Shown piece by piece: positions 5,220 to 38,600 of a stretch of 64,000 nucleotides of DNA. The first letter of the stretch is position 1. Each line of letters begins with the position of its first letter. This DNA is from Lytechinus pictus (Eukaryota): assembly GCF_037042905.1 (NCBI RefSeq), contig NC_087249.1, positions 49,538,001 to 49,602,000 on the forward strand. Direction: 5' to 3'. A model generated the notes under the pieces. It did no database searches. It saw only the letters and a list, made by a program, of their open reading frames with translations, and was not told the DNA's origin. The translations under genes were made by a program, and so were the position numbers.

Positions 5220-5220
5220 G

Positions 5221-5234
5221 TGGGGGCTTGTCCG
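5221..5234 (+). other. Primer-binding site, tRNA-Pro type
   Basis: TGGGGGCTTGTCCG lies 1 nt after the LTR and is complementary to the tRNA-Pro 3' end (canonical TGGGGGCTCGTCCG) with one G-U substitution. Confidence 0.85.
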
Positions 5235-11531: not shown

Positions 11532-11542
11532 AAGGAAGGGAG
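11532..11542 (+). other. Polypurine tract of the Gmr1-like element
   Basis: AAGGAAGGGAG immediately before the 3' LTR. Confidence 0.85.
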
Positions 11543-11802
11543 TGTGACGAGTTAATAATACACGTTTAAGTCTGGAGGACAGACTAGAAAAAGGATATAT
11601 CGCTATGTGAACAACGGACTTGTGAATCTGAATCGTCATGTATATATGTTTGTATATAAACTGTTTTAAAACGATTTGACATGGCGTGGCTTGTTTGCTA
11701 ATTCAGGAGTGTCTGAATGGAGAACAAGATTCAGGAGGTTTACGTTGGAGTTTGTCCAGGACAGGTAACAATAAGAGCTTGTATGGACCAGCAAACGTAA
11801 CA
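11543..11802 (+). repeat. 3' LTR (260 bp) of the Gmr1-like element
   Basis: Direct repeat of 4959-5219. Confidence 0.97.
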
Positions 11803-12140: not shown

Positions 12141-12464
12141 NNNNNNNNNNNNNNNNNNNNNNNNNNNNNNNNNNNNNNNNNNNNNNNNNNNNNNNNNNNN
12201 NNNNNNNNNNNNNNNNNNNNNNNNNNNNNNNNNNNNNNNNNNNNNNNNNNNNNNNNNNNNNNNNNNNNNNNNNNNNNNNNNNNNNNNNNNNNNNNNNNNN
12301 NNNNNNNNNNNNNNNNNNNNNNNNNNNNNNNNNNNNNNNNNNNNNNNNNNNNNNNNNNNNNNNNNNNNNNNNNNNNNNNNNNNNNNNNNNNNNNNNNNNN
12401 NNNNNNNNNNNNNNNNNNNNNNNNNNNNNNNNNNNNNNNNNNNNNNNNNNNNNNNNNNNNNNNN
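12141..12464. other. Assembly gap (N run)
   Basis: Run of N. Confidence 0.99.
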
Positions 12465-14137: not shown

Positions 14138-17100
14138 TCATTTTCTGGAATTGGGTATCCGTTTAAAATAAGTAAATAGCGAATATCCGAAGAGATCGAA
14201 GAATTCAAAGAATGTGAGGATGCTCCCACCAAGCCACAGTCCCAGCGAACCACCCACGTCACCTAGAGATTAAATAAACAAAATAAACAAATACACAACA
14301 AATAAACAAGAAATAAAGAATATGAATTATTGTCAACAATTTGATAGACACCCACTCGAGTCCCTCCCGCAACTTGGCCCAGCATGCTCAGGGAGCAAAT
14401 CACTCTTTGCTCTTGCCACCGGCCTGGGACCAGGGAGGGCTCCGTTGCATACAAAGTTACCGTTATATGGTAACTTTGCCATGCAATGGTAACTTGCATG
14501 GAATCCTTTATTTTGAATGTCTTTTGATCATCGTTACCATTGTAGTAAGCAGCGGATGGCAAAGTTACCATAATAATAAATGTTATGCAACAGGACCGAG
14601 TAGTTTACCCAGTCTTATGGTTCACACTCTCTTGATTCGGCATCCCCTCAGTCAACTCTGTAACAATCTCCCTCAATGCATAAAACAAGCAACATAACAG
14701 ACGAATTCAAATCCATGTTAAAACATACACCTTTTCATTAAATAACAATTTCCCTTAGTATTTTAAACAGTACCCTAAATTCCTCAGCTGTCAACTATGC
14801 AGTTATGATATTTTTTGCTGAAATTCCTCTCTTTTTTTAATTTCTTAAGCGCTTAGAGACATTTCTTTGAGATAAGCGCCAAAGAGATATTGTCAATCAT
14901 CATTGCATTGATGGGGAAGGGTGGCGCTAACCTTACAACGTCTCTTAGTTTCAGACATTATTATGGTCGTATTCCGATATCTAAACCCGACTCTAGACTA
15001 GGCAATGATATATCATACGCTTTAATAAAACGCCAGTGTTGGTTTACTTTTTCAATATTCATGGCAGATATAATAATAAGGTGCATGTACCACATGATTC
15101 ATTCAAAATTTTTATATGCATATAGTGTATTTAGATTTAATTATTGTTTGACACATGAACCACTTTCCCTATTCATTCATTTTCCAGGCCATGAATCTTA
15201 TTAGAATAAGTTTCTCCCGAAACTCGTGATGTGACCAAGAGAGGCATTTATTGATATACTTACATAAAAAACCGAAGAAAGTATAATCGATCTTCTGGGT
15301 GATCTGCCGGATGCTCATCTCTTTAAAGTATATCGAAAGCATGCAAAAGTTTTCCCTATACATGACAGAAATAATGATAACAATAATAGGCATTATTTTA
15401 TATAGCGCCATCTATCTAGAAAAAGTGCATTGTTATTGTTATTATTACCCCGGCTTTAGCTCGAGCTGCCATTCAGCGCTCAGTGCATTCAAGGAATTAA
15501 TCATGTTAATCCCGTCGGGTACCAATTCACCTCACCTGGGTTTAGTGCAGCACAGTGTGGGTAACTTTCTTGCTAGCTAAAGGAAAACACGTCATGGCTT
15601 GGATTTGAACCCACGTCCCTCTGATTGAAAGACGAGAATCGTTACCACTAGATCACGGCGCCCCCATTTCATAACTGTCATGATATCAATAGAGACTTTT
15701 AGATTCGAACGTCGTCATAGACGACTGCTACGAGATGACGTCATTTTTGGCCTCGCCGGCTAGCAGAATCGAGAACCTCACCACCTCGATTCTGCCGTTC
15801 TCCTAAATCATAGTCGATGTGCACGTGAGTGATGTCATTTCAACATTTCAGCGTGAAGATCAATTGTAATTGATCCTTTCCCTTATAAAATACAGTTTTC
15901 AGTGAATTCACACATTCAAAATTGATGTATGTTGTAAAATGCATTATATTTATCATATTTGAAATTGTTTTCTGAACTCCAAAATTTATATCGCTATTTC
16001 TCCTATCTCGCGTAAAAAGGAATAAAAGCAAGTGAAAGAGCAAGTGTGCACAAGTTGCACCTCCGCATCAATCAATATCAATGCTACATGCGCATTAAGT
16101 GTAAAATACTGACCAGGGGCCAATCAGGAGTGTTCTTTCCTAATTGCAATTCATTGCAAACCTTTGTGTTACGGAGCCCAGGGGTCATTGAAGATTTTAC
16201 AATTCTTGTGGTAATTTCAATATTACACCGACTCAGTGTACCAGGGGAGCCTTTCATCAACATTTTTATCCAACAAGTTGTCAGATCCGACAAATTTCCT
16301 TGATTCTGATTGGCCGATAGTCACCGTTACTATGGTAACTATGATAAAGACAGAAGTCCTTTCATGAAACGCTTCCCTGGAGAACACACCCTGTGTCATG
16401 AAGGTGTCCCCGTCCTCTATCGTAAAGTCCCTAGTACCGAAATTTTTACCCCAATGGTTTGCATTCTAGTCGACATTCAGCGTTTACTCACTTCAAATAA
16501 TCTTCCGAAATAGGGTTTTCAGCTGCCACCTTTTGCTCCCAGTATGCCGAAGGGTATGCCGTGGTTGAGATAGTTGGTCTGTACGATCTTATAGAACAAG
16601 GCACCGGGCAGTCACATGTATGGTTTTGAACGAACGAGCCTGAAAGGAGTGAAATGACGATACAATTACAGTAATGATGGTGATAATGATGAGGATAACC
16701 ACTATTTTGATAATGATGATAACAATAGTAAAAATCATATGAGTGTAGGCCTAATAGTAATGATAATGGTAATAGTAATAACAATACTACTGTCCAGCAT
16801 GTCTATTGCCTCTTAAACAATCATTAGAGCCCACATTTCACGGGGGGGGGGGGGGGGGGGGGGGACACGTACAGATTTTTTATGGGTAGGGCATTCTGCT
16901 GATAAGCAAAAAAGCCCTTACTTCAAAACAAATGGAATGCCTCTGACTGTCTCGCCTGCATTTCGCGATTCAATATAACAGCAGTGCTGATTTTGAATAA
17001 TTATTAACAAAAAGCACCATTCATATACTATTGATATAAAATACTATGTTCATTGACCCTTGATAACCTTTGACCTTGATCATATGACATAAGACTCGTG

Positions 17101-20100
17101 CGAAACGATCAGTGATACTTGATTACCCTACATGTATGTCGACGTTTCATGAACTAGATCCATAAAATTACAAAGGTATGACGGCAATTCTTTGAATACC
17201 CTCAACATGAACTAAGTTCATTGACCCTAAATGACCTTTGACCTTAGTCATGTGAACTTAATCTCAGGCAGGATGTTCAATTCTTGATAACCCTTATGTC
17301 CAAGTTTCATGAACCAGGTCTATATACTTTCTAAGTTATGACGACATTTCAAAAACTTTGGTTAAGATTTTGATATTGATTCCCCAGACATGGTTTGACC
17401 TTGACCTTAGTCGTGTGACCTCAATCTCAGGCAGGATGTTCAATAATACTTGATTATCCTTATGTCCAAGTTTCATGAACTAGGTCTATATACTTTCTAA
17501 GTTATGATGACGTTTCAAAACCTTAGCCTTAGGTTAAGATTTCATGTTGACGACGCCGCCGCCGTTGGAAAAGCGGTGCCTATAAGTCAATAGCCTATAG
17601 AAAAAAATTATACGCCTATCCATCCGTCCTTCAAAAGAGAGGAGCACCTAATATGCAACGTGAAAAATCTCAACATCGAAAATTTACAATGTACAACTTT
17701 TAGCACTTTTAGCCAAGAGATGGGGGGGGGGGGGCATATATCGGATGCCCCAGCCAGGATCAGCGTCTGGTAGAACCTTAAGTGATCAGAGCATTTCTTA
17801 CCATAGTATTGATTTCCACACGTGTAAAACCCAAGAACAGTGCATTCTGCCTCATTGCTTGCCACTGGGAAGAAATCATAATAATAATAATCAGTCATTA
17901 TGAGAGTTTCGATTATAAAAATGTTGAAGTTTTAAAATAATGCTACCCTGGGACCGTATTCCATTCAATTTTCAAGCCAGAAGCTAAAGTACCATACTCA
18001 GTATTTAGCTTAAATCTAATTATTATAGTAATCAGTGGCGTACCGTGGGTTACGGCATTGGGGGGGGCACCAGCAACAATTTTGAGTCACTTCGTGAGCG
18101 CGCGAAGCGCGCTCAGTTGCCAGGTATACTAACCTAATAGAGACATTTTAAAGACAATGCCATTAAACGGATATATATCTCACTAATCAAATAATGCGAA
18201 CGCGAAGCGCGAGCTGAAAATCTTGATATTGAGATCTAAAAAGGGACATTATAATCAAATTTTTGTAATCATGATACGTACCTGTCTCGCTAAACAATGC
18301 GAGCGCGAAGCGCGAGCTGATTTTTTTTTTATATATTGAGCCCAAACAAGAAGATTTAAAGGACTATATTTTAGGAATCCATTAAGAGTATACATATCTA
18401 ATCATAGTCATCTAATGCGAGTGCCAAGCGCATGCTGATTTTGTTAGAATTATATCTAAACACATTAAGCACTTGTATTCATTGTAATCATGAATATCAT
18501 AGGCATCTCACTAATCAAACATTGCGAGCGCAAAGCGCGAGCTGAAAATTTAGATAATTCAGACCTTAAGAGGGGCATTTTAGGGCTTGTTTGTAGGAAT
18601 TCACGAAGACCATACTTATTTCACTAATCAAGTGATGCGAGCGCGATGCGCGAGCAGAAAATTGTTGATATTCACATCAGAAAAAAGGGACATTTTAAAG
18701 GGGAATCCTACCCAAATAAAAACTTGTTTTTATAAGAAAAAGAAAAATCAGACAAGTTGATAGGTGATAGTCTGAACAATATTGGACAAAGAACAAGAAA
18801 GTTATAAATTTTTAAAAGTTGTAAATATTGGTAATCACTATACTCATGAAGACTTCAAATTGGCCGCATATGGGATGCCATAGTGATGTAAGGCAAGGAC
18901 TACTCTTCCTTGTACTCCAATACATATTATGGCTAAAATGTAATTTTTCCCAAAAGTTTTATTTCAAATTATATTTTTCTTTCATGAGGACATTAAACAA
19001 TATACTACCTGGGTTATATTTAGATTACTGCCCCAGGGGAATGGGTACTTAGGAGAAATTAGGAGAAAACCACAAATCCCTGATAATAAAGTACATGGCC
19101 TATGGGAAAGTTGTCCTTGCCCCTTGTCATAATTTACTTACCCAGTTGCCAATTTGAAATCTACATTCTATTAGTGATCTCAATTTTAAAGCAGCTATAA
19201 CTTTCTTATTGCTTGTCCAATTTCTTTCAAACTTTCACCATTCATTTTAATTTATTTTTCTCCTTCTCAACACAGCATTTATGGCCAAGGCTGGATTCCC
19301 CTTTAAGGACCGATCCGAATTCATGGAGAGCAGACATATCTCACCAATCCACTAATGCGAACGTAATCACGGACAGGAAATGATTTATATTAAGACCTTA
19401 ACACGGGGCAATCATTTTAAGTAGTCATGAAAAAGAAGCATATATCACTACATAAAACAATAATAACTCGAAGTGCGAGGAAATATATTTGGTGTATATT
19501 GACTTGAAAACGGGAAGTTTTAGTAAAAACAACATAATTATATGTCTCATTAAACAGACAATGCAAGCACCAAGAACAGTGAAGATATAGGCCCTGAGAA
19601 AATTATGTTTCATAAAGTTATAAAAATGTTTATTGTGTAATGTAACATAACATAATTAGGATATAAAATTATAATGAATAAGAAGTTCCTCTTTCCCACT
19701 TCGTTTCTCTTTCTTTCTCCCTCTTTTTCTCTTTTTCCCCGTTTTTTTTTTTTTTTTTTTTTTGGTCAGCCGATTGGGGGGGCACATGCCCCCCCATGCC
19801 CCCCCGTAGTTACGCCACTGATAGTAATAATAAGTTATAATATCAGAAAACAATAAACACCATCCTGGGTAGTGTTTCATAACATGCATAAATCTTGTCG
19901 TAAAGTTACGCACAATTTAACGCACGACTTTAACATGTTCTAATCACATAGATATCATCGACAGTCACGAATGTGACAAGTCATGCGTAAGTTTTAAAGA
20001 GCTAAATCCCTCAACATCATAACTACATTTATTTTTTCCATCATGAAATCTAATTGATCTTAAAAACTAACTTACACGGACCTATCAAAACTCATTTTTT

Positions 20101-23100
20101 GCTGAATAGGTCTTGATAGAAAAAGGTCTTTGACACTCACTCGGGGTAGCGAAGAATTTGCATCCACATGCGTTAAAGAAAAAATCGCTTTGACATTCAA
20201 TGAAGCATTCAGGAAAACCATATTTATCAAAATACTTCAGGGGTTTATCATGGCACACCCCGTAAGGCTGTTCCAGATTGGAAGTCTGAATATGGAGGAG
20301 AAAAAGAAAGGATGGAGTTAGGCAAACAAGGTTTCTATCATTGCGACATTAGAACGACGAGACGCAGAACACTTTCAACAACACAGAAAATGTATGATTA
20401 AATTACCTTCATGACAAAGAGCAGCCAAGAAGTCTTTGTCGAAAATTGGTGAATCACAGCAGCAGTTTCGTCCTGGATTCTGGACAAACGACAGATGTGC
20501 AATTTTTCGTCAGCTCCGAAACTTGTAACCAAACTGCTGCTCCGGGGGGAGGGGGCACTTCCATTGACGAGTGGATACCATGCGTGACCATGGGGTTCCG
20601 AAAAGCACCCTAAACAAGTATTTTCCATATTCACCAATTTTCGACAAAGACCTCCCAGCTTATCTACGAAGAATACGTACAAAGAACACAATATAGGCAT
20701 AATCAATACTCTAGAGGTGTCATGGTGTAGTGATAAGTCGAGGGTTCGTATCCCAGTCGGTGCCAATGTCCTTTTGAAAGGCACTTATCAGGTATTAAAT
20801 GAGTACCCGGTATGATGTGAAGGTAAATGTGATTTGATTGGCATGTGTGCACTCCAATTAAACGGTTGGCTGCCCAGATACTCTCCAAAGAGTGGAGATG
20901 GTGCACTTTAAGTGTGGAACAGTGATAGATTCAATGACTGGCCTAATGATAATTACATGTAACGTGCTTAGAAACACAAAGTATGAAGCGCTATATAAAT
21001 GTCACTATTATTTTATCATCATGCGGTAGTTACTCCAGGGGCCCGTCTCACAAAGAGTTATGATTGATCCAATCAATCGTAACTCTATATGGAAATCCAT
21101 CAGTGTCATAAAATTTTCTACAGGAAATTTGCACAATGTCCTTTGTAAACAAAAAGAAGCACAGTGAATTTTTAAGAAAACAAAATGCATGAATATACAT
21201 CGAAGCTATAAAATATTTTGAACAAGCATGCATGATACATGTTGACGTTGCTGGCCGTCCATATTTGCGATTGAACGGATCAATCGCAACTCTTTGTAAG
21301 ACGGGGCCCTTCAGTCACACCAACGGTACGATTCCAAACCGACCGATGGTGCGTCAAGGGAAATATCGTCAAGTTTTGGTCGGTCTGGGGATGTTGCAGA
21401 AAAAAGATGCGATCAAACACAACTGCAAATATCAAACCCAACTTGACTTTCTACCAATCAAATAACCGAATTCATAGGGACTTTTGGTTTTCGAATTCTG
21501 CAATGACCATGGAACACGTAACACAAAGATGAGCGATTAATCGCCAATTTGAAAGAACTATTCTAATTGGTTCCTAGTCAGTCCACTGAACAAAATGCGC
21601 ATGCAATGATGATCGTCATAGGTCATTTCATTTAGCGATTAATGCTAACCTTTGTGTTACGCGACAATACAGAGCCTTTAAAGTGCCATCGACTTATAAC
21701 TTTTTATAAGTCGACGTATCTCGCCATATCGACATAATAAGGTTAGGCATGGCAAGATAAAGTATCTCGCCAAGTCGTCAAATCGATGGCACTTTAAAGG
21801 CTCCGTGGTTATCGGTTTCGCCAAGGTGACTGGCGTAAGTGATCTGAGCCGCGGCGTTTCGACGCCTTAGATTTTCGATGGCAACAGAGGATCATATCCT
21901 ACATCACTAGACAAGGCCAAATCAAATTAACGACAACATAAGTCCTTGCCATATCAGTCAGTGTGTTGGTTCGTGAATATTGACAGAAGCGGTGCTGGAA
22001 TATTACCTCGGTCACTTCAACTGCAACATGGGTGTGCGTTCCGGGTGCGATTCCAAAGCCATGATCAACAACGCGCGGTTCTGTGCCATAATCGTAGATA
22101 TGGACTTGAAATCCCGTCGAGATTCTTCCATTAGGCTCGAGGAAGCTTTCGTATTGCTGAACATTGAGCAAGAGTTCCAGTCCGTGCTGTTTACCTAAAA
22201 ATAGTGTGTGAAATGGATAAACCATTAGGAAGAATTCGAAGACGTCCATTTTGTGCATTCTTTTTAAATTTCCAACAGAAAAGTGTGTAACACGACTGCA
22301 TCTCCCACACCATCGCACTAAATAGCTCTCAGCCAGTCACTTGCAAGAGTTTCTCGTAGTTTTTATACCCGTTGGAGAAAATTTGCTGAGTAAGATGTGC
22401 GCGAAGCGCTTACTAGATGAACACAATTAGTTTTCAGAATTTTACTAAGGATGGTTATCAAAATCAGATAAACAAACTCTCAATGAGCAACCTGACCATT
22501 GCGCTCGTAAACTGTCAGATTTTCTATTTAACAAACCCAAAAGTTGGTTGAAATATGAACCGACTAACTATTGGTTTAGAAATACCGATTCATTTGCATG
22601 CAATTTTGTTTTAAATAGCAGTTCATAATTATTTGAACCAACTTACAATCTGAGAATGTAGTACATTTTAAAGTAACATAAGCATTATGTGGTACTGAAG
22701 AATTATTCACAGATTTGTTCTTTTAACTGCTGAGGTGAAAAACTTTATCAAGCATATAACTTAAGCGATGCTAAATGTTTTAAATAACATTTTATATGAA
22801 TTACCCTTTGAACTCTAACGTCACACCATGGACGAATGCACACCCTAAATACGATCGAACTTCAGGCTAGTGATATCAGGGCCCCGTCTTACAAAGAGTT
22901 GCGAGTGATCCGATCAATCGCAACTATGGAAAGCCACCAAAGTCAACATATAAAATGCATGTTTGTTCAAATTTCTTTTTGGATATGATGTACATTCATA
23001 AATTCATCGATTTCTTGACAATTCGGTGTGTTCTCTTTTGTTTACAAATGACATTTTGCGAATTTCCTGTAGATAAAAATAATGACATTGATGGATTGCC

Positions 23101-26100
23101 ACAGAGTAACGATTGATTGGATCAATCGTTACTATTTGTAAAACGGGGCTCTGAAGTCGTATTGTAAATCATACTAGTACGAAACGATTGCTTTCTTATC
23201 GAAATGGATACATAGTCACATATATATTAAAACAGATTGCAACCAACTAATTAAACCTTTCATCTAGGTCCCGTCACACAAACATGACAAAGGTTAACGA
23301 TTAATCTTTAAATGAAATGACCAATCAAGAGCATCGTTACATGCGCAGTTTGCTCAGCAGACTCACTAGGAGCCAATCGGAATCGTTCTTTCATCTAATA
23401 TCGAATGATCGCCAACATTTGTTACTTTAATACTCATTTCAGTTTCATTTGATTCCATTGCGTCGATATAAATTCATATTTGTTATATTTTTTTTCTTCA
23501 GACTGTAAGTATTTACCTGTTCTAGATGATTTGAATGTTATATTCTGTAATTTTTGTACAATTTTTTTGGATTAGGAATAATCATTTTGAATAAATGCTG
23601 TATTAATAATGGTAACTTACCAGATCGGGTGACGGTTACAGGCGGGTTTCCATTGCTTGCATCGTTAAAAATGAAACACAGACCCCAGTCAGTTACCTTG
23701 GTCGTAAAGTTAGCATGACTGAGTGCCCCTGTACTCCTCCATGTGCCACTAAAAAGAAATAAACATTTAACTGGTATAAACAACGCATTGCATGCACATT
23801 AATTGAAAAATTTGAATAGTTTCAAACGATTTTGTAATCCTATTGTTGTCATTCATTATTTTGATTTATTCATTTATTGACTTATATAATTATTGATTTT
23901 TTTATCTATTTATTTATTTATAATTTTTTATTCATTTATTTTGTTTATTTTTTCCTTTGGGGTGGGGTATTTGCACCACGAAGCCACCTTATGTTATAGA
24001 CTAATGGAATAAACCCAAACAGGATTCAAACTCTTTCTCAAAAGAAAAAAATAAATGGTTTACACTTTACACGATATAAGGTAAACAGTAGTGACATTTT
24101 CAATCTAATATTTTTGAGATCCATCAGTTTTGATCATAATCATTGTAGAGTAAGAAACTTACAAAGCAATTGTTTCTTCAGCTCGATGTCCGTATTGAGT
24201 GAATAGCTCGCTCATCGTGACCGAGTCCACATAAGGGGCGTGCGGACTTGACGTATTCACGGCGAAGAAATTGTCGAACAATTCATTGAGAAAGTCCGCA
24301 AACTCAGTCCCTTCAACAGCAGACCGTCTACAGTTATGATAGAGAATAAGACAATTTATTGAAACAAAACACCACTTTAACGTGCTTAAATAAGATTCAA
24401 AATAACATGTTGTACAGATAAAATTTAGAGGGGGTCAGATATAGCGTATTGGGCAATATTTATAAAGACCTGTGTGCTAACGAGCAAAAAAGAAAATTTC
24501 ATTTTATATTAAGTAAAAAATGATATGTCACTCTTTTCCTTTCTTGTCCTCCTTTTTCTTGGTTGTGAAACTTACGGGGGGGGGGGGGGGTGGGTTCATG
24601 ACCCCAATGCCCCCCCCCCCATTCTTTACGCCAGTGATGTATTACAAGGACGTAGGCTGGTTTGAGCATGGGGAGGTGGAACTAAAGTTGTATGGGGGGT
24701 GCACATCTTGGGGAGGTAGAACTAAAGTTTGGAAAATCAACTGTTGAAAGTAGAAGGGGTACAAATTTCGTTTTGCTTCCTAATGTTGGAACCTGCCTCA
24801 GCGGGAGGCTGCATGTGCACCCCCCGCCTACGCCCTTATTGAAATATTGTTAAAAGGTTGATGATGAAAATTTGAAGGAAAAAAATCAGTTTCTTGTCCC
24901 GGCCTTTTCACGGATTTCAGTTTGTACCATTATCAATATTTAAAGGGGTGCCATGCACATTGCCTCTTTTTCAATGATCCAGAATCCGCCTGAATCCCGA
25001 ATTAACCTCCGGGTGATTTCTTTTTCTCAAATCATTGTATGTTTTCATTAACAAGGGTGAAACACCCCCCCCCCCCCCGAAAACGAATTTGCTCTCATCG
25101 AAATTGAATGTGCTTTCACTGTTTTGGCTTCTATATTACCCTGCTATAAGCTAGGCTATTGATTCTTGTGTTCACAGCTTTTTGATGAGCAAATCTTTCC
25201 TGCCGGTACCGATGGCATTTACTTCACCTGGGTCAAGCGTAGCACGATGTGGATGAATTTCACAACCATCCCAAAATCATATACCTGAAAGATGAATTTA
25301 ATTTAGAATTACCTGTAGGTGTTGTAGTTGCATATTGCCACTGTTGGAAAGGCGAGCACTTCTTCATAGTTGGATATCACAGTCACACTTGTTGGGTAGG
25401 TGGCTAGATATTGGGCTCGTATGGTGATATGATATGTTAGCAAACCGACTCCAGATAAGATGAGGAGTAGCCAGAATAACCTAGAAAAAAATCAAGAATC
25501 GTTGAAAAAAAAACATATGGGCCTTACACTTCGCACATTTGACCAAAAAATATGACCTCCCCCCAAAAATCAAACGAAGTTGATTCATTTTAATCAGGGA
25601 GATCACCTTGTTAAATGTAAAAGGCGTGCGCATTTTTTATTATTTACCCTAAAGAAAAAAATGGGCAGCCACTAAAGCAAACCTTATATGACGTACGTAG
25701 AACAAGGGACATATTGATGACGGGGGAGGGTTCGATCCCTTGTCCGGGCCCTTGTGTAACCCACTCCCACAACCACACCCCCACACACACATTAATAGCG
25801 TGACGTCATGTGTACGCCCTTGTGAGATATGAATACAAGTGTAAATCGCATTACAAAACAGCAATGAAGACAATCTGTAGTAAAAGAATGTTCAGATTTA
25901 TTGAAATATTTGAGATATGGCCGAAGATGGGGACTGTATGCCTAACTTAGTTCATAATTTTGCCACGTTGATCTTCACTTGACTAGCTCGCATTTCAAAA
26001 AGGGGATGTAAAACGAACTCACTTCTAAATGATTTATTATGCAAACATACAGCACAGAGCCACACAATTAAACATTGACCAAGAACACTAGAATTCGTTT

Positions 26101-28740
26101 ATAACCTGATAACGGAAATGCAGAAAAAATATTTTCATGAAATTAGTCCGTCGTTTTTCCCCTATAAATTGAGGTGCCATATCAGACAGAGAAAAAGAAA
26201 CTAAAATTCTTATTAAGAAATTTGATTTTATTTTTGAAAAATTATATTCATATTTACGTTGGGAGAAAAAGGCGACATGTTAATTAAAATAAAATAATTA
26301 CAGAAAGAATGGTTTTACAAATTTATTTGATTTATTAATGATTATGCTCTAATAAAAATAATAATTTTGTCTTTCAACAATACGTCGATTTTTTTCGGGG
26401 ACGCAATATTACACGGCTAGAACTTGATTGATGTCACTATAATCCAAAAACAATTACTACCTTGCAAATTGTTATAATGCTGCCATTTTATTTGTAAGCA
26501 TACACACAAAAAACAGAAACTTGCATGTGTTAGTAATCGTACTCAAATGTCAAAATAATTTTGACACTATAGCGACATACTTTGATGAGTACTTTCACTC
26601 AATGAAGGTACTTTGAAAACTCATCTTGTCGAGTATATTTCATTTGACACTATAGTGACACATCAAGTGAGTAAATTTGAATAACTCAATCTAATGAGTA
26701 ACTTAACCCAGTGTAATGAGTATGTTTAAAGTATATTTACTGACTTTTTGAGTATGTGAGCATATTACACACTTGATTAGTTTTAGCGATAATCTGACGA
26801 TTAACTGCGCTGGGAAAATGAGTAGTATATGACTCTTGTATGTGAGTTTTGGGGTGTTGAGATCATGCATCCAAGTAATTTTACTCGGATCTCGCGTTAA
26901 TTGCTTGCGCGCACACGTGATACCGGCCAAATGTGCAGAGCATGAAGACTTTTCTGGTACATGTCTTTTTGTGGAGGAGGGCAAATAAGTGACATCGTCC
27001 ATGATTACATAAATCATGGACGATGTCACTTATTTGCCCTCCTCATAAATGACTCCAGCAATCGTAGCGGCACACTGGCCTTCACTCCCTTCTGGCCCCG
27101 GGGTAGCGGCGCAACAACAGGCTGGTGTGTGGTTACCCAAACCGAGAGGCGTGAGCCTCGGATGGATGAGAATGTAGATCAATGCACCCTGTTGTCACCA
27201 TAAATAGCATTTATGTTTGCCCCATACATGTAGGTCTAAGCTATTATTGTCAAGAAAAGTAATTATAGAAGAAAAGGGGGAAAATAAATAAAAAGACATG
27301 TAGAACTTACCAGAAAAGTCTTCATGCTCTGCACATTTGGCCGGTATCACGTGTGCGCGCAAGCAATTAACGCGAGATCCGAGTAAAATTACTTGGATGC
27401 ATGATCTCAACACCCCAAAACTCACATACAAGAGTCATATACTACTCATTTTCTCAGCGCAGTTAATCGTCAGATTATCGCTTTACCTGGCTGTGAGTTT
27501 TTTCACCCATTCTGCTATCATACCTTACAAACTTGAAGAAAAACTCATTTGTACGGATTGTTTTACATACTTTCACTGACAGGGATACTCAAGAAAAGTA
27601 GTTAATAAGTAATGTCCTTGAAAAAAAGATCAGGTGTAACAGAAACCCAGATTCTCGAGTAAAAACACATACGTTACGAATTTTTGCACTTAATTCTTTA
27701 TGTAAAAAACAATTTTACTCATGGAAAATAGTTCTCGTTTTTTGTGTGTACTGTATTCGAAATTCAATCTATATATACATTAAAAGCCAGTATAAAGTGA
27801 ATTACACTCATCTAACTTTGCAATCTTCCAATGTGTTTCATATTTTTCCTGCTGTTGATTCTCTGTGAAAATGTTATTTATCAATTTTTGTTGGTTCGTA
27901 TCTCGCAATCTGTGTCTGTACTGATTTAATTATCATAGAGCTGTATACAAAGGCCATACACTGTTAAAAAACCCGTGATCTTACAGAAAAAAAGATTTTG
28001 CAGAAAGCAATAACAGAATCATTCTGTAAGTTCATAAGACAGGAATTTTTCTGCAATTTAACAGAACAGGTCTGTTTAAAAAGGGAAAAAGGGTGTTTTA
28101 TTCAAGGAAATTTGTAAGATTCCATACATCAAATACCAATTTCCTGTAAGATTACGCAATCTGGTAAAATTACAGGTGTTCTCGAGATTCTACTGCAGGA
28201 ACTTCTTTTATTTTAAGGAGAAATTTTGTATCTTTAAACTTTCAGCCCAGTTCACACTTTTGAGGGATTTCTATCAAAGAGAAAAACAAATACGCAGTTA
28301 TAATTATTTCGTTCGATCGGGCACCGATGAAAATGAACGTTCGTGCAATATTGTGAAAACAAAACGTTTTTTATTTCATTCACCATTTTTTTAGTTCAAG
28401 ACATGTACATTCATAATAATGCAGTCATGAAATATAAAAGTGACAACCCCCCTTTCAACCCCCTTTGTGGGGGATTACCGAAAACCCAAAAGTAATGCTT
28501 TTAGATGACAGCATACCTTCTGAATGTCACTTCCACAGGGTTGAAGACGTATTTCATTCCCCCGATTCCGATCCCATCCGGGACCGACCTGTAGAAGACG
28601 GCCCACCAAGACACCCTGTCCTGGTACCTTCTGCTTGTCGTTGTGATGGGCACAGTCCTGTCTTCCGGTTGGACCCATCCACTTCCGGTTTTAGGGCCAT
28701 GTTGTTTTTCTGGGTAGGTCTTATTATTCCCCTGTTCCAT
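14138..28740 (-). CDS. DEG/ENaC (ASIC-like) channel subunit, paralogue B, 481 aa. Exons 28517-28740, 25313-25480, 24163-24327, 23621-23748, 22007-22194, 20141-20285, 17802-17864, 16492-16639, 15264-15355, 14138-14262
   Basis: Ten GT-AG exons sum to 1446 nt in one open frame. Motifs: TM1 RRLFWLLLILSGVGLLTYHI, FPTVAICNYN, TDWGLCFIFN, GLELLLNVQQYE...GFQVHIY...GFGIAPGT, thumb cysteines (CDCPVPC), TM2 CDVGGSLGLWLGGSILTFFEFFD. Confidence 0.93.
15375..15665 (-). mobile_element. tRNA-derived SINE
   Basis: Minus strand: ggggcgccgtgatctagtgg...gggttcaaatcc...acccaggtgaggtgaattggtaccc...gcgctatataaa tail. Confidence 0.85.
16243..16379. mobile_element. Small MITE; related copy at ~56471-56604
   Basis: ggggagcctttcatc...atgaaacgcttccc termini and shared internal ttgtcagatc(c/t)gaca sequence. 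Confidence 0.65.
16933..17587 (-). mobile_element. Helentron-like (HINE/DINE-1-type) non-autonomous element with internal tandem repeats, one end truncated
   Basis: Same family as 37346-38223: gtctcgcctgcat subterminal repeat, repeated ccaagtttcatgaactag/tgacctttgacct units, cgacgccgcc...ggaaaagcgg end. Confidence 0.7.
18033..19820. mobile_element. Non-autonomous hAT-type DNA transposon
   Basis: TIR CAGTGGCGTA...TACGCCACTG; 8-bp TSD ATAGTAAT at 18025-18032 and 19821-19828; internal periodic gcgagcgcgaagcgcgagctga motifs. Confidence 0.88.
18699..19302. mobile_element. Kolobok-type MITE nested in the hAT element
   Basis: TTAA on both sides, termini AGGGGAATCC...GGATTCCCCT; a second copy in opposite orientation at ~43790-44564. 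Confidence 0.82.
20716..21020 (+). mobile_element. tRNA-derived SINE, degenerate
   Basis: tggtgtagtg...gggttcgtatccc, aaatgagtacccgg core, aagcgctatataaat tail. Confidence 0.75.
21038..21309. mobile_element. PIF/Harbinger-like MITE (~270 bp)
   Basis: TIR ggcccgtctcacaaagagtt...aactctttgtaagacggggcc; other copies at 22879-23150 and 52096-52366. Confidence 0.85.
21672..21803. mobile_element. Small MITE (132 bp) with 21-bp perfect TIRs
   Basis: GAGCCTTTAAAGTGCCATCGA ... TCGATGGCACTTTAAAGGCTC. Confidence 0.75.
22879..23150. mobile_element. PIF/Harbinger-like MITE, inverted relative to 21038-21309
   Basis: Same TIRs; internal sequence is the reverse complement of the 21.0 kb copy; CAG/CTG flanks. 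Confidence 0.85.
26785..27482. repeat. Long inverted repeat with 175-bp arms (26785-26959 and 27308-27482)
   Basis: Arms are reverse complements with one mismatch (tgggaaaa vs tgagaaaa); the ORF track shows the same peptide on both strands. Confidence 0.95.
26974..27044. repeat. Perfect 33-bp-stem hairpin with a 5-nt loop
   Basis: gaggagggcaaataagtgacatcgtccatgatt-acata-aatcatggacgatgtcacttatttgccctcctc. Confidence 0.95.
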
Positions 28741-31700
28741 GTAGCTTCGCGGTGAGCTTTTGTCTTGTCTCTATCTTATTACCGCTCGCGAGACAACCGA
28801 AAACAAATAGGTACAGATTTCCTTTTCAGTTGAGCCGAGAGAAACAATTCTTACAGTACTACATGTATATCTTCCCAAAGTGCTGATCAGGGATGGGACC
28901 CAGTGTCCGATTTTCTAGTCTATTATTTCTCTCTATATAGATATCCAAACTAAAAGATTCTATTTCGTTTTCTTTTTCACGCAGTCGAACCGAAAGAATC
29001 CATTCTTTGAGTCGTCGTCCTTGCCGAAACCTTTGAAGAATACTAGTCATTGTCTGAAAGTACCACTGTTTCGTGATCACGTTGGGTAGATTTTAGAACC
29101 TTTTGTGCAAATATACTTAGCAGAAATGCAAATTATCTGACCCATTCTTTCCACTTTCACTCGAAATGGGCCTAGTACGTAAGCAAACATCTAATCTACT
29201 GTCTCTCTCTCCTTTTCTCATGTCCTCACCTGTCCCAGCCACCCATCAATAGCCCCTTGATTGACCATCCCCCCCTCTCTCCGATCACTGCTCTCTTTTC
29301 GCTCATTATACGGTAGACAACGAAATTGTACCAGGCCAATCATTACTAGATGGTAAAAACAATAAAAGAGAAATAATTTTTGTTTACGAATATATCCGAA
29401 GTCACCTTCATGCTTCATGCTTTTATTGACTCACGAGCCTCTTTTGTCATGCAAACAGTGGTTTTACAATAATGACTTAAGTGATGTTACATAATTGTTA
29501 CCATCTGCAAGTAACAGCATCCACGAAAAATTAACGAAGCTAAGTGCTTGCCTTCGCGTGCGTTGTTTCCGGTGCTGGCGGAATGGCGCCGTGGCGGTGC
29601 CTTTTAAGGAGGGAATTAAGGAATGGGTAAGTTCCAATTGAAAAGGTAATATGAAATATCAAAATATGACTCGATTAATGAACGAACAGAATAAAAATTA
29701 TAATGGTTCGAAGGCAAAAAGGAAAAAAAAGGAACAGGGACAATGATTCCTGAGCAAGGGGCAACCTTTTCCCCTGTCTTACCCATTGGAGCTACCCTGA
29801 TCCTCTCAGTGCACAATAATATTTCGCAGTGATAATAATTTTGTATTGGCCATTTATTTACAATACCTTGTACCAATAATACTTAAGTGACTAATTTAGT
29901 TCGTGTGGGATCTCATTGTGACGATTGTACTTCCGTTTTTAAACAAACTGATTCAATTAAATATTCATCTCTCTCGCGCGCGCTCTCACTCTCCCACGCG
30001 CACACATCACAGATACACCCACACACTCTCTCTCTCTCCCTTTCTCTTTAGGCTAGCTTAATAGTGATGTTTATTTCACAGCGAAGACCTCTTTGAGTGA
30101 ATAACTTTGCACTTGTTCTGTAATTATGCTTACATCAATATGATTTCGACCTTTTTGTTCCTTCTCTTTTTTCTTTCCTGTATATACACGCATATATGAA
30201 TAAGTTGATTATATTTTCTTCATTTCCAAGGGGGATCCACACTTTACAAGCTTTGCTTTTTAGTGGACCCCCTCATTTCCATTTATACTCAATACTAAAC
30301 TGATTTTTGTTTTACGAAGTAAGAATGCTCGTCTGTAAAATTGTATTTGATTTGTTTTACTTTATATTACTCTGCATTATGTTTTGAATGGAAATGGAAT
30401 AAAGAATTTAATTGAATATTTTTTTATTTTTTTATTTCTCAGTTGCTCTTTTAGCGAGGGATAATCCTTATCCAGATTTTCACTTGTTTCCTTTCATTCT
30501 TATATTCCATATAATAAGCTAAACCTATAAAGTTACACGACTCCAACGAAAGGTAGGCATAATGTTATACATTAGTAAAATCATTTGCAATTGATTTAAA
30601 TAAAAATTAATATTAGCAAATCACATCGAATAGAAATATTTACGACACATTTTGTATTTGCGACAGAAGTTGAAATTAAATTTCAACAATGAATCGAAGA
30701 AATATGTATCTTCTATATGCTTTCAATTGTATTCATTACTATTAAATCATTATTAATATTATCTTCATCAACATCGTAACCATCTCCATCAATCACCATC
30801 ATAATTTTCTTATCAAACTGAGAGTTTAAAATTTGTTTTTATTTCTAGGCTGGTATCTCTTCGCGGCGCCTCTGCATGCATACGACTTGTGACATTACAA
30901 TTTCATTGTACAATGCTAATCGCATATGATGTTTTCAATTTTACATTGATGTTAAACAGTATGAAAAAATACGTGTTAATAGAGTTATCTCACCAGTACA
31001 TGCAGAAACTCCCACAAAGAGAGAGAGACAGAGAGAGAGCGTGAGCGGGGGAGAGAGGGACAAGTGTAGTTTGATTTTTTTTGTGATTTGTTTTTCTAAA
31101 AAAAAAAAGTTGCTGAAAGATTGGCGGCAAGAGAACATGATATCACCTAAATGGCCATTTGTCTCTTTCAAGAGTTTTTAATATATCAAGTACATTTCAT
31201 GGAATGGAATTTATGTGTATTTTTTATTTTGGATTTGTTTAGAGTAACAAATGGTAATATCCAGTAGAATCATCAATTGAAGAGCAATGGCTATTTGAGT
31301 TGCATCTTGATATAAAATAAAAATGATATAATACTTCAGAGATTCAATGTTACATGATTTATTCATTATTTGACAAAAACAAGTGATCAATGCTGTCAAT
31401 GAATAAAGCCCAATCACAAAATAATTGTAGTAATCGGTTTGAGATAGTAAAAGAAAAGCATATACATTCTATACGCAAATCCTGTCAATCGTGTTCCCAA
31501 GGTGGGAATACAAGATTTTTGTATTCATTACTAATTCATCGTAATAAAACTTTTGTAGACAAATATATTAAAGATAGCCTTAATGATGTTTGACCTTGCC
31601 GGAAATGCCGCTTAAAAGTGGCATTAGGTTTCCATTTGCCATTGAATGAGTAAATGAAAGCAACAACTGATGAAACAGATAAACATAAAAACAAAAGAAC

Positions 31701-32680: not shown

Positions 32681-35600
32681 TCAAGGGGTTCTCCTTGTGT
32701 AAATGTATGTCGAGTGACCGAAGAGATCGAGGATTTCAAAGAAGGTGAGGATACTCCCACCAAGCCAAAGACCAAGGGATCCTCCGATGTCACCTGTTGG
32801 GTGCATAGAAATTAGAATAAAGAAAAGTTACATCAACACATTCGGGGAAAAAAAACGAATTTGCATTTGAAGCATCCTTTATCTCACTTTTATTCTTCAT
32901 ATTGAATGATTTTTTTCTATGTTATAGTTTAGGAATGTGAGATTGGTAACTAAAACATTTGTCTCTCGGAGTGAGAAATGTACCAATGCGCGTCAAAAGA
33001 AGCGATTTCAAAGTTTTCGTTGCTCTGTATGGGTAATTTCTTGACCAAACCATAAGATGTGGTGGCTTCAATCTCAGGGTGCCGTATTCTGAACTTAGAT
33101 CACGCTTTTATGGAGTGCCAATTGTCAACCCATTACCAGGTAAAAATTATTCCAATCCTGCAATAAAAAATTGTCAAAAATTATTATGCCGTGAAATTAG
33201 GATTGGAAAATATGAAAGGTAAATGAATTTTATTTAATTTATCATCTTTGCCATGAAGTATCCATCCTCACTCCAGACAACGTCTGGATCATGTGGTAAA
33301 GAAGTTGGTTGACTTGAAGTCACCCTCGGAACAGCACTTACATGTATTTAGTTCCTCCCCAACGACAAACTATTAGAGGAAATAAAATTATCTATGAGTC
33401 TTAGCAACACTGCATCTACAGATCTATATCGATTTGAGTATATCCAAGCATTTCTACCCTTAATCTATATTATTGAAGATAATGATTTGAACTTACAGAG
33501 CAAGCTGAAGAAGGTATAGTCCTTTTGTTGGACCCGTTTTACCACATTCATCTCTCGAAAGTAAAAGGTGAGACGGCAAATATTTTGTCTGAAAAAATAT
33601 TAACATTGAGGATTAAGAGTATAATATTAGTATATCGGTTGGAAATTTGCTGGTAGTATGGAAGCTTTCAAAGCTAATTGCCTTGGTCTGCAATGATCAT
33701 ACAGCAATATGTATCTACGGGACTGTGGAGGATGGGGTCGACAGGACTTTTCGATTTGGCTAATAAGGATATTACAAGGGATCAAGACTATCCGATATGT
33801 CGATGGCTGTGTCTGCAAGGGATAACTAACGACCCCCCCCCCCCCCCCCGAAGAAAATACTACCAATAATAATAAATGAATGAATAGGTAAAACCTAAAC
33901 AAATAATTTAACAGAAAAAAAAAAAAAAAAAAATTATAACAGTAATAATAATAAAACATCTAAAATTTCCTTCTCTGGGCTATATGGCATCACCATCGGT
34001 TAAACGTTGGATCTGGACGATCCATGGAATCAAGGGCCATAGTGAACACTGGAACGCTTTAACCCTGTTCTACATGCAGATGTCAAGACCGCTCAAAGAC
34101 GGAAAGAAATCTCGAAGCTGGCCAATAGTAATCAAAAGATATTTCAATGATCTCCAGCGTCCTTTACCGTGTTTACGGTTTACTAGTGATCTTTCATTGG
34201 TATTCATGGTATCCCCTTCTATTTTCAATAGTATACTTAAAAAAAGTTTGAGTGGGAATTCATTAAGACGCTCTTTCAATTTTCATTCACCAGTCTTTCA
34301 TCGACCCCCCCCCCCTCCTTATGAACATGCATTATGAATACTCGCGGGTCTTACTACTGTAGTATTCCCCCCCCCCAAAAAAAAAAATAACCAGCTGCAG
34401 AAAAGACCACTACAGAGCGGATAGAATGTCGATTATCTTTCACTAGGCCTATTCCTTCAAGGTGGTTAAGAGCATTTCCTCTATTCTAAGAGAATGCTAA
34501 AAGATCTTGAAAATTCTTATTTTCAGAGGTCTTTTTTAGGTCTCCGTTCTTTGGAATACGGGTAGGCCTACATTACCTGAAGTATTCTGCTGTTTCGTTG
34601 TAAAGAGAAGCCAGTGGTTCCGAGAAGAAATTTGCTGGATAGGCTGCTTGCGATAATGTTGTCACATAATTCCGTGTCGAGCATGGCGGGGTACAATTAC
34701 AACTTACGTTATTAACAAAGTCCCCTGGAAATAACCAATAAACATTCAATAAAATGTTGTGATATATACCCTTAACTGATCCATCTTTATCGATCACAAT
34801 GAAGTTTCATTACAATATACGTGTGCCATTGACAGGGCGTAATTCATCAACAACACATACATGCAACATAATAATGATAATAGCATATAAAGATACATGC
34901 ATAATATAGAAAAGGAATAAAACTTTTATTAAAGACTTCAAAAGAATAGGACTACATTAGAATTTAACGTTGTCGTAATCTAGAATATGAATCGTCCTCA
35001 AGAGAACTAAACAGTATAGATTGAAGTAAGTTGCACATTGTAGAAACTGTAGGAGATATTAACGAGAATTATAGATTTAGGACATTTTGTCTTTTGTAGT
35101 GATCGTGAATTAGACAAGAAAAATAAGGCCAAAATTTATTATGAGATTACCAAACTGGTGACAATAGGGTGCGCCTTATATCGGTTGCAGTGAATAGGCC
35201 GAATTCGCAATGCATCATGGGAAATCTGATTGCTGATTTCCTTAATTTTACCATGGACTCTTTCGTCTACACTGTTGATGATGATTTTGAAACTATATTG
35301 CCTTCGTCAGAGTACTTTACTATTGACAAATTTAAAAATGGCTTTGTTAATGACAATTCATTTTCGTTGTTTCATATGAATATTCGTAGTATTAATAAAA
35401 ACTTTGATCACTTGAACATTTTATTGCAAGAATTGGTTACCAAATTTTCAGTTGTAGGCCTCTCTGAAACATGGCTCTCAGATAATAGTAACCTTTATTC
35501 TCTTCCTGGCTATCACAATCCAGTCGTCAACTGCAGGCACAACAAAACTGGCGGTGGAGTAGCATTGTTTATCTCCTCAACCTTAGAATACCGTGTTACA

Positions 35601-38600
35601 CCTGATCTGAATATAATGAATCAGTCTCTTGAAACAGTTTTGGTTGAAGTGGTTATCCCTGGACAAAGTAATTTTATTGTTGGTGTTGTTTACAGACCAC
35701 CCCAAAGTAGTGTTGAGAATTTTACAGATGAGCTACAAGATCTGCTGTCAAATCCTGTACTTAATAGCAAGAGGGTTTGCTTGTTAGGTGATTTCAATAT
35801 AAACCTTATGCAGTATGGTTCCAGTGCATCAGTGAATAGTTTTTTAGATGCTCTTGCTTCTTTTAATCTTGTCCCGCTTATCAATAGACCTACGCGTGTA
35901 ACCGAAAATACTTCAACATTAATAGACAACATTTTCTCTGTAGTTCAACCGTCAATAAAATCATCTATCTTAATTTCTGATATTTCAGATCACTTTCAGT
36001 AATTGCTTCTTTTCCATTAAGTATAAACAAGGCAAACGCCAAGCGTTGTCTCGCCTGCATATTGCAGTCATGAAGAGAATGCATGTCAAAACTACATGTA
36101 TGCTATATGACTTAGATGGACCTCTGTTACGAGTTTGGCGATCCCACCTCGAAGCTATAGAAAGTTATTGTGTGTACAACACAGCAGTGCCAGTCATGGA
36201 AAGTTCATTGACCTTTGACCTTAATCAAATTCAACTCACATTCGAACTTGACCTGCACCTTCAAGAGATGGACCTCTTGTTTGAATTTGGCAATCCTACC
36301 TCGAAGATATAAAAAGTTATTATGTGTACAATAATGCACAGTGCCAGTCATGGAAAGTTCATTGACCTTTGACCTTAATCAAATTCCACTCACATTTGAA
36401 CTTGGCCTGCACCTTCAAGAGATGGGCCTCTGTTATGAATTTGGCGATCTCACCTCGAAGCTATAGAAAGTTATTGTGTGTACAACACAGCACAGTGCCA
36501 GTCATGGAAAGTTCATTGACCTTTGACCTTATTCAAATTCGACTCCAGTGCCCCAAACTTAGAACTTTGGCCTATTCGCTGCAACCCATAGATGGCGAAC
36601 CATAATTGTGAATCCACCGAATTAATTGCTCCGGGCTAAATAGAGTAACGAAATGATGACGTCAGTTGCCACGGTGTCATGGTGGTCTGGTTCTAAACAA
36701 ATGAACCCGGAGCGTGTTTGTCATATGAGAAAATGGCTGCTAACAGAATTTCACCGCTTGCAACCTCAGAATGATGGTAATTTTTGCAAATACAAATGTG
36801 TATAGAAGATCGTCCGTTGCGACTCTCTTTATAACCAGCCGGTTCGTTGTCATGACAGTGACGTCACACTTCGGTACTCTATTTCGTCTCAGATTTAGGG
36901 TAAGGGTTGCAATATGGTTTTGTTAGGTTTAGGGTAGGGTATAGTGTGAAATCCAGGGTTGAAGTTGGTCATTGGATTAGTGTGTGGAATTTAGAGCGGA
37001 GCAATTGTCGCTGGAGCTTAATATCCGTTCAAACTTCCATAAATATCTAGTTGTAAAAATACGACATAATATGCCATGTAATATGTCTTAACAAGTTCAA
37101 GAGATTTCTGAATAAAGAATGGAGAAAACTGTAAATTATAAGTAAGAAAAATTAACATAATAATAGTAAAAAGCGATTGACTGCTAATTGAATTTAGATA
37201 AATAAATGATAAGTAAACAAAGAGAAATATTTGCATATACTGTACTAGGGTCTACCAAAACAAAAAAGAATACCTCGTAAAACAGTTATTTACAACTAGA
37301 AGATTTAAAGTCCGAAATCTGAAGAAAAAAAAAAAAGATAAAAAATGGAACGCCTCTGGCAGTCTCGCCTGCATTACGCGATTTGATATAGCAGAAGTGC
37401 TGACTTTGAAAGCAGATATTGAATAATTATTCACAAAAGAAAACACTAATATGATAATGAAATATTGTCTATCGACCCAAAATGACATTTGACCATCATC
37501 ATGTGACCTAAGACGTGTGCAAAACAATCATTCATACTTGATCACCCTTATGCCTATCTTTCATGAGCTAGATCCATAAACTTTCTAAGTTATGAATGAT
37601 GCCAATTCAACTAAATAATACTCCCAACACGGCCAGAGTTCATTGACCTTGAATGACCTTTGATCTTGGTTGTGTGATCTGAAACTCGCACATGATATCC
37701 AGGGATACATGGTTGCTCTTATGTCCAAGTTTCATGAACTAGATCTATAAACTTTTAAAGTTATGATGACAATTCCATAAATACCCCCAACATGATCAGA
37801 GTTCGTTGACCCTAAGTGACCTTTTGCCTCTATCATGTGTCCTGAAACTCAGGCAGGATCTTTAGTGATACACCATTACCCTTATGTCTAAGTTTCATGA
37901 ACTAGGTCCATAAACTTTCTTAGTTATGACGACATTTCAAAAACTTGACCTTAGTTAAGATTTCGATATAGATTCCCCCAACATGGTCTAAGTTCATTTA
38001 CCCTAAATGACCTTTGACATTGGTCATGTGACCTGAAGCTCAGGCAGGATGTTAAGTAATACTTGATTACCCTTTTTTTCAAGTTTCATGAACTAGGTTT
38101 ATATACTTTCTAAGTGATGACATTTCAAAAACTTAACATTGGTTAAAATTTCATTCTTAACGACGCCGCCGTCGCCGTCGGAAAAGCGGCACCTATATTC
38201 TCGCTCTGCTATGCAGGCGAGACAAAAATGATTATAGTTACCTAGTACTGGGTTAATGCAAGTAAAAAATTGCCACGGAGAACAATCGGGTACATCACCT
38301 GCCAAAAAAACAAAGAAATCATAAAATTAGAGCAACATAATCTATAGTTCGAGGGTGTAGGCTGGTTTGAGCGTGGGGAAGTGCACATCCTTGGGGGTTG
38401 AACTAGAGCTTGGAAAATCAACTGTAGAAAGCAGAAGAAGGGGTACAAATTTCGTTTTGCTTGACAGTGTCGGAACTCTTCTGCCTCAGCGGGAGGGTGC
38501 ACGTGCACCCCCAGCCTACGCCCTTGTCAGTTCAAACGAAGCTTTTGCCATTTTTATAATCATAATTCTTATTGATGTCAGCTGTTATAAACTGTTCTCC

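Follow-up and report, generated by a model that had tools for sequence, protein, structure and literature searches.

A histidine-less subfamily of ambulacrarian DEG/ENaC channels at a tandem gene locus of Lytechinus pictus

Can DEG/ENaC channels persist without the histidine of the His-Gly (HG) pair that precedes their first transmembrane helix (TM1)? The literature credits “most if not all” DEG/ENaC channels with a conserved His-Gly, and the His has been known since 2020 to form a further constriction below the selectivity filter, with a role in selectivity and gating that is still argued from point mutants. The question is raised by a 64,000-nucleotide (nt) stretch of the 812-Mb genome of the sea urchin Lytechinus pictus (C5:49538001-49602000, hereafter the window), in which an all-versus-all comparison of open frames identified three tandem DEG/ENaC paralogues: gene A on the plus strand at the left edge, and genes B and C on the minus strand. 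A preliminary description of this DNA had read B and C as a DEG/ENaC subfamily that lost the HG motif and as the best candidate for an undescribed system. We find that B and C, together with A, which lies partly in the window, are intact and under selective constraint and belong to an old ambulacrarian subfamily of DEG/ENaC subunits. The subfamily has given up only the His of the pair, and this may have changed the lower pore.

Family membership and the substituted motif

All three genes are named “acid-sensing ion channel 1C-like” in RefSeq, with products of 481 amino acids (aa) for B (XP_054754151.2), 492 aa for C (XP_054755178.2) and 509 aa for A (XP_054755180). The spliced translations of B and C matched the RefSeq proteins exactly, with ten coding exons each and introns that are all of the GT-AG type (Table 1). 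Exon 1 of B consists of the disordered N-terminal tail and the His-less pre-TM1 module, and its last exon holds the G-G-S belt and the second transmembrane helix (TM2). The first exon of A, which is His-less (G-I-G-G-M-K-Y), is located at C5:49527181-49527294, ~10.8 kb upstream of the window. The pre-TM1 peptides that the preliminary description had quoted for B and C are present in the DNA. They are encoded on the minus strand, however, with plus-strand frames at the same coordinates giving unrelated text with stops, and the B segment is bounded by position 28626 instead of 28625. In translation, B reads Y-Q-D-R-V-S-W followed directly by W-A-V-F-Y-R-S-V-P-D, G-I-G-I-G-G-M-K-Y and V-F-N-P-V-E-V-T-F-R-R, and C reads Y-R-D-R-V-S-W followed by I-A-V-V-F-K-S-V-P-D, S-V-G-L-A-G-L-K-Y and A-F-N-A-G-E-V-R-W-R-R. 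An AG|GT donor directly after each peptide cuts the second Arg codon, and the last three residues of the quoted peptides, LFW in B and FLW in C, are real but stem from exon 2.

Full-length matches to the Pfam family ASC (PF00858, cut-off 23.6 bits) were obtained for B (270 bits, E = 4.5e-80), C (246 bits, E = 7.8e-73) and A (268 bits), extending from profile position 6/7 to 454 of 455. When B was compared with solved structures by phmmer, ASIC2/ASIC1 ranked first (E ~1e-49), followed by BASIC/ASIC5 (1e-34), ENaC (1e-24) and FaNaC (1e-23). The gap-free alignment of the pre-TM1 segment to ASIC that had been proposed from the letters was reproduced in this search, with “i-g-g-m-k-y-v-f...r-r-l-f-w” of B facing “l-h-g-l-a-h-i-f...k-r-a-l-w” of ASIC1. 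The claimed loss of the HG motif must be narrowed to its first residue, as only the His is replaced (by Gly in B and by Ala in C), whereas the Gly is kept. Across the family alignment, the His gives way to G, A, S or T (or, in individual members, to V or P), and the Gly of the pair, which is G61 in B, is invariant. Mutation of this Gly in ENaC leads to human disease (PMC7308080). The GxS filter motif in TM2 is present throughout, and R74, R75 and W78 at the start of TM1 and seven Cys columns (C125, C210, C302, C331, C369, C371 and C375, all in B numbering) are invariant. In the literature, HG is treated as a DEG/ENaC hallmark and not as the definition of the family. Since these other DEG/ENaC features are found, the family membership of B and C stands despite the loss of the His. 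A, B and C are DEG/ENaC channel subunits, and their closest solved relatives are ASIC1/2.

The genes are already in RefSeq under ASIC-like names, and a functional HG-less DEG/ENaC protein has been reported from Caenorhabditis elegans (DEGT-1, PMC8536179). Hence, B and C are a variant of a known family and no undescribed system.

Constraint and transcription of gene B and age of the subfamily

A genome search with the module of B detected 12 loci in L. pictus that carry a His-less module, all with a phase-2 donor after R-R. Recurrence at 12 genomic places with the identical donor is far beyond chance. From the ASC genes whose first Pfam-model match in the genome search starts at profile position 1-4, 19 further genes were fetched, and 17 of these read [S/T]-x-H-G-[I/L/V] in the open frame of TM1 with no intron in between. 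DEG/ENaC N-termini in this genome thus fall into two clearly distinct types, His-less in no fewer than 12 paralogues and canonical xHG in no fewer than 17.

Absence of the His could be trivial if B and C were degenerating paralogues, or if a wrong first exon had been annotated that hides an HG-encoding one. We consider this highly improbable. The frames of B and C are intact over ten exons. For gene B, to which this analysis was confined, the ratio of nonsynonymous to synonymous substitution rates (dN/dS; Nei-Gojobori) against the Lytechinus variegatus orthologue XP_041477856.1 was 0.19 over the whole gene (dS 0.115), and residues 38-82 differed by six synonymous and no nonsynonymous changes. 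This purifying selection contradicts neutral decay, and the earlier reading of the module as conserved and not decaying was borne out. The L. variegatus orthologue has the identical ten-exon layout, and conservation of the motif reaches from sea urchins as far as hemichordates. No usable HG-encoding alternative exon was found in a six-frame scan of the window. The sole hint in the other direction is an H-G at residues 14-15 in the tail of B and of its Strongylocentrotus purpuratus orthologue. This “H-G-P” (~28696-28701, minus strand) lies ~45 residues upstream of the canonical site, has no counterpart in A, C or any other paralogue, and is probably coincidental.

Exon 1 of B is also used in spliced transcripts. 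Public runs were compared with positions 24100-28900 of the window, and two samples (X1 and X2) of a single study, from runs that are only guessed to be RNA, each yielded one contig of 2.0 kb that joins exons 3, 2 and 1 of B at the predicted junctions 24327|25313 and 25480|28517. The skipped introns end in CT..AC, i.e. GT..AG on the minus strand. The contigs cover 28515-28900 in X1 and 28515-28815 in X2, so that X1 extends 160 nt upstream of the ATG. Only one place in the genome matches B exon 1 at 100%, which makes a retrocopy or processed DNA copy unlikely. In two raw RNA-seq runs (X19 and X20), ~6% of which was sampled, no reads fell on B exons, a result that is uninformative on absence. 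We conclude that gene B is transcribed, in a manner that is not ubiquitous but restricted or low judging from the two runs without reads, and that both decay and a hidden HG exon can be rejected for this gene.

Full-length searches retrieved relatives from the sea urchins Lytechinus, Strongylocentrotus and Diadema, the starfish Patiria miniata, and the acorn worms Ptychodera flava, Glandiceps talaboti and Saccoglossus kowalevskii. In the family alignment, the His position is occupied by Gly, Ala or Ser in sea urchins, by Thr in starfish, by Ser, Ala or Val in a group of short hemichordate proteins, and by Ser, Thr or Pro in a longer hemichordate group (~660 aa). The His-less core G-x-[small, S/A/G/T]-G-[I/V/L/M]-K/R-[Y/F]...R-R...W is shared by sea urchins, starfish and both hemichordate clades. 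The upstream motif Y.DRVSW...SVPD, which the preliminary description had taken as the common signature of B and C, is real, but in the form Y-x-D-R/K-V/M-S-W...S-x-P-D it was seen only in sea urchins, and the conserved core lies elsewhere. A profile of the sea-urchin module matched 35 proteins among 1.84 billion representatives, the named ones being all sea-urchin DEG/ENaC proteins; this result allows no wider inference, since the starfish and hemichordate members were missed by the profile. Four repetitive proteins (P0019, P0027, P0030 and P0032) were discarded as false positives of the profile.

Other traits unite the subfamily beyond the module. Both His-less groups carry a Cys in place of the ASIC Gly before D-I-G-G (C-D-I-G-G), at what we take to be the “degenerin” position. 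The filter belt is invariantly G-G-S in the echinoderm and short hemichordate clade, whereas the long hemichordate clade keeps G-A-S. Exon structure and intron phases agree between B and C of L. pictus, B of L. variegatus, the P. miniata gene, and the short and long genes of P. flava: a phase-2 boundary splits the second Arg codon at the end of exon 1, exon 2 measures 168-171 nt, and short exons (57-63 nt and 92 nt) sit at equivalent places. The long hemichordate clade has one extra exon of 534 nt, which accounts for its ~660-aa length. In the P. flava protein P0077, this exon (L034, 9561-10094) encodes an insert of 178 aa and directly precedes the exon whose end codes for C-D-I-G-G. At another P. 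flava locus (L033; GCA_041260155.1 CM083789.1:9701818-9733137), two products of 472 and 473 aa share their start and end at 13382 and 30820, respectively, and a His-less first exon may be spliced there to one or the other of two tandemly arranged sets of exons 2-10, yielding alternative channel bodies.

In a first maximum-likelihood tree, the echinoderm and short hemichordate clade received a Shimodaira-Hasegawa-like approximate likelihood ratio (SH-aLRT) support of 99. A grouping of fly Nach with the long hemichordate clade was dismissed as a long-branch problem, and the tree was rebuilt without Nach and P0071. All 33 His-less proteins then formed one clade (SH-aLRT 92.8) against an outgroup of two vertebrate ASICs and two distant DEG/ENaCs. 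As BASIC, true ambulacrarian ASICs, and amphioxus, cnidarian and placozoan relatives were outside this thin sampling, the sister group and a restriction to Ambulacraria are not established. The single clade, the shared intron and the shared derived residues favour a single ancient loss of the His, which these sequence comparisons would place before the split of echinoderms and hemichordates. In the literature searched, which did not extend to Lynagh et al. (2018), neither a description of the HG-less ambulacrarian subfamily nor functional data on it were found. Published DEG/ENaC trees probably contain members already, without naming them and with their N-termini cut off.

The lower pore without the histidine

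An AlphaFold2 monomer model of B, built with a family alignment of 45 sequences, reached a mean predicted local distance difference test score (pLDDT) of 82.6. In the model, residues 1-42 are disordered and are followed by a helix (45-56), a turn (57-61, I-G-I-G-G) and a short helix (62-66). The two transmembrane helices, TM1 at 72-102 and TM2 at 436-475, flank a large Cys-rich ectodomain of the ASIC fold, and TM2 is broken at 452-454, which is the G-G-S, as in the domain-swapped ASIC pore. The top Foldseek matches were all ASIC structures (E ~1e-38). The best, over 451 columns, was 9e4a, a human ASIC1a whose transmembrane domain is domain-swapped (TM-score 0.75-0.8), and the matches included, over 450 columns, chicken ASIC1-SMA (6vtk), the structure that first showed the re-entrant loop. 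The model is consistent with preservation of the re-entrant loop in B, which a monomer model cannot prove.

The likeness to ASICs has clear limits. Vertebrate ASIC1/ASIC2 (6vtk, 9e4a and 6l6p) share with B the plan of two transmembrane helices, the cysteine-rich ectodomain, the di-arginine, the TM1 Trp, D-I-G-G and the Ser of the GxS belt, and the pre-TM1 segment of B is likewise predicted to form a helix-turn-helix. However, the subfamily is only 26-30% identical to ASIC1/2. The His of ASICs is exchanged for Gly, Ala or Ser, the Thr two residues before it for Gly, GAS for GGS and the Gly before D-I-G-G for Cys, and a phase-2 intron parts the pre-TM1 segment from TM1 in the B/C subfamily. H73 and D78 of rat ASIC1a face Thr and Ile, respectively, of B in the phmmer alignment, in a place where most paralogues read ...H-P-K-S-V-D-V; both residues, together with E411, E416 and K211, are listed as fairly conserved in all ASICs (PMC9949801). 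Judged by its letters and fold, the subfamily is related to ASICs, but it departs from several traits of ASICs in the strict sense, namely the proton-sensor residues H73/D78, the HG motif and, in the echinoderm and short hemichordate clade, the GAS belt. The RefSeq names are best-hit labels.

A bona fide ASIC from the same animal group has been characterized in Schizocardium californicum. According to Marti-Solans et al. (PMC9949801), this channel, which belongs to the same superfamily and shares the automatic “ASIC-like” naming, is proton-gated with a PNa/PK permeability ratio of ~2.9. Its expression insert encodes ...D-I-H-G-V-K-H... and thus keeps HG, whereas the B/C subfamily is without the His, and ambulacrarian ASICs in the alignment of that paper carry a GAS belt (...G-G-N-M-G-L-F-L-G-A-S), whereas B and C carry GGS. 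By these sequence differences, the B/C subfamily appears to be a different lineage from bona fide ambulacrarian ASICs. Among HG-less proteins, C. elegans DEGT-1 resembles B and C in being a DEG/ENaC subunit that reportedly has no pre-TM1 HG, for which wild-type ion permeability ratios were nevertheless measured, as DEGT-1d (PMC8536179). It is a single nematode protein with an altered filter as well (GAT), whereas B and C keep the Gly and the filter Ser.

What the missing side chain might do can be approached from known structures and mutants. In chicken ASIC1, His29 faces the threefold axis, where it makes a 2.1-2.6 Å constriction below the GAS belt, and hydrogen-bonds Ser445 of the neighbouring subunit (PMC7308080). 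Mouse ASIC1a with the mutations H28A, G29A or T26C/E/V is functional and does not discriminate between Na+, K+, Li+ and Cs+, with a pH of half-maximal activation (pH50) of ~7.2-7.3; for H28A, PNa/PK was 0.8 and pH50 was left-shifted to 7.3 (PMC8404453). In the subfamily, a small residue has replaced the His, while the Gly, di-arginine, TM1 Trp, extracellular Cys and filter Ser are kept. We propose that the module still forms a helix-turn-helix re-entrant loop under the filter and that the proteins assemble as trimeric cation channels. With all pore elements kept except the His side chain, the pore would lack its ring of three His, its lower constriction would be wider, and the His-Ser bond between subunits would be absent. 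A Gly also occupies the T26 position. By analogy to the ASIC1a H28A and T26 mutants, weak Na+/K+ discrimination and altered gating would be expected, and since H73 and D78 are not conserved, the activating stimulus would probably differ from ASIC-type proton gating. That the subfamily consists of trimeric cation channels that select weakly between Na+ and K+ and have altered gating is a reading in which we place about as much trust as doubt. More tentatively, and with doubt prevailing, we suggest that the wider lower pore is non-selective, possibly Ca2+-permeable and opened by a non-proton stimulus, which would make these channels the natural, co-adapted counterpart of ASIC1a H28A.

Several points weigh against these proposals. 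The claims on selectivity and gating are drawn purely by analogy from mutants of a protein with 27-30% identity. These mutants resemble the B/C subfamily in that the same positions carry small residues (PMC8404453), but they are engineered single changes in a His-adapted background, whereas the natural subfamily had a long time for co-adaptation. We estimate this time at roughly half a billion years. The structural evidence comes from a monomer whose pre-TM1 pLDDT is ~63-75, the tree has few outgroups, and the two raw RNA-seq runs gave no reads on B exons at ~6% sampling. Furthermore, the co-evolved GGS belt, the Gly at the T26 position and the Cys before D-I-G-G could compensate for the His and restore selectivity, and homomers might be silent, by analogy to ENaC alpha, in which His substitutions (Ala, Asn or Cys) strongly reduce, and largely abolish, the current (PMC7308080).

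Compensation leads to a first competing view, in which the proteins are ordinary Na+-preferring DEG/ENaCs, the role of the His is taken over by GGS, the Gly at T26 and co-evolved residues, and its substitution is of little functional consequence. The stability of the His-less state through ambulacrarian history, with an invariant GGS, C-D-I-G-G and a W after G-L, speaks in favour of this view, as does the comparatively robust selectivity of ENaC toward pre-M1 mutations (PMC8404453). However, the long hemichordate clade lacks the His and keeps GAS, so that GGS is not a required compensation, and even mild pre-M1 changes abolish the selectivity of ASIC1a (PMC8404453). We regard a fully compensated pore as unlikely.

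Silent homomers lead to a second view, which we likewise hold improbable: B, C and their relatives could be obligate heteromeric or modulatory subunits that are silent alone and co-assemble with each other or with HG paralogues to tune gating or selectivity, one or two His-less subunits per trimer setting a graded size of the lower pore. DEG/ENaC heteromers are common (ENaC, HyNaC and ASIC2b), the L. pictus genome keeps both kinds of paralogues, and A, B and C are tandem neighbours, although this is weak evidence by itself. The ENaC alpha currents cited above point in the same direction. On the other side, homomers of mouse ASIC1a H28A conduct well (PMC8404453), and the His is missing from a whole subfamily and not from one member.

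Further features of the window and implications

The coordinates of the three genes and of other elements in the window are compiled in Table 1. Gene A is represented by its last five coding exons. RefSeq lists isoform pairs for the L. variegatus counterparts of C (492/504 aa, P0080/P0081) and A (492/507 aa, P0083/P0084), and alternative splicing may thus occur in the tandem gene cluster. Intron 1 of B harbours an inverted repeat, whose arms translate 94-100% alike on opposite strands, and a short repeat with a very high summed word depth (~1000-1700) in the X1/X2 transcript-like contigs. These repeats are probably fragments of dispersed transposable elements.

Table 1 Positions of the DEG/ENaC genes and other elements, counted from the first letter of the window
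Feature	Position	Strand	Evidence or remark
Gene B, coding exon 1	28517-28740	-	ATG at 28740; translation, exact spliced mapping, phmmer, transcript contigs
Gene B, His-less pre-TM1 module	28517-28626	-	Y39 to first two bases of R75; G60-G61 at ASIC H-G
Gene B, 5' untranslated part of exon 1	28741-28900	-	transcript contig colinear with genome to at least 28900
Gene B, coding exons 2-5	25313-25480, 24163-24327, 23621-23748, 22007-22194	-	exact spliced mapping
Gene B, coding exons 6-10	20141-20285, 17802-17864, 16492-16639, 15264-15355, 14138-14262	-	exact spliced mapping; stop included
Gene B, intron 1, inverted repeat	26706-27029 and 27304-27576		
Gene B, intron 1, short repeat	27964-28285		
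Gene C, coding exon 1	46462-46733	-	...G-L-A-G-L-K-Y...RR; translation, exact spliced mapping
Gene C, coding exons 2-5	45547-45714, 43472-43633, 42399-42529, 40477-40667	-	exact spliced mapping
Gene C, coding exons 6-10	39778-39922, 38242-38298, 34577-34724, 33497-33588, 32681-32793	-	exact spliced mapping
Gene A, last five coding exons	~30-173, 771-836, 1212-1367, 2776-2868, 3260-3386	+	tblastn, open-frame comparison; boundaries approximate
Long terminal repeat (LTR) retrotransposon	4959-11796	+	between genes A and B
LTRs of this element	4959-5212, 11543-11796		direct repeats
Open frame of this element	6521-10459		1313 aa
Assembly gap	12141-12464		adjoins the element
Second pol frame	57499-61323	-	1275 aa

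The LTR retrotransposon between genes A and B adjoins an assembly gap. Its two LTRs are 254-nt direct repeats that are 100% identical and lie 6584 nt apart. The open frame of the element encodes SCAN, integrase, reverse transcriptase and RNase H domains, with the integrase upstream of the reverse transcriptase, which is an unusual order for Ty3/gypsy-type elements. A second Ty3/gypsy-type pol frame has the usual domain order (zinc knuckle, reverse transcriptase, RNase H, integrase) and shares 38% identity with the first element across 439 aa.

The RefSeq names of these genes are unlikely to describe the function of the proteins, which lack the proton-sensor residues of ASICs and, unlike true ambulacrarian ASICs, have no HG. 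An old multi-gene clade that lives without the His under purifying selection is a natural experiment on the role of this residue. The two His-less branches, one with GGS and the other with GAS, form a comparative series for the role of the His and for the residues that must co-vary with it. If the pore is indeed non-selective, the “universal” HG gate would be dispensable, and DEG/ENaC selectivity would be evolvable at the re-entrant loop.

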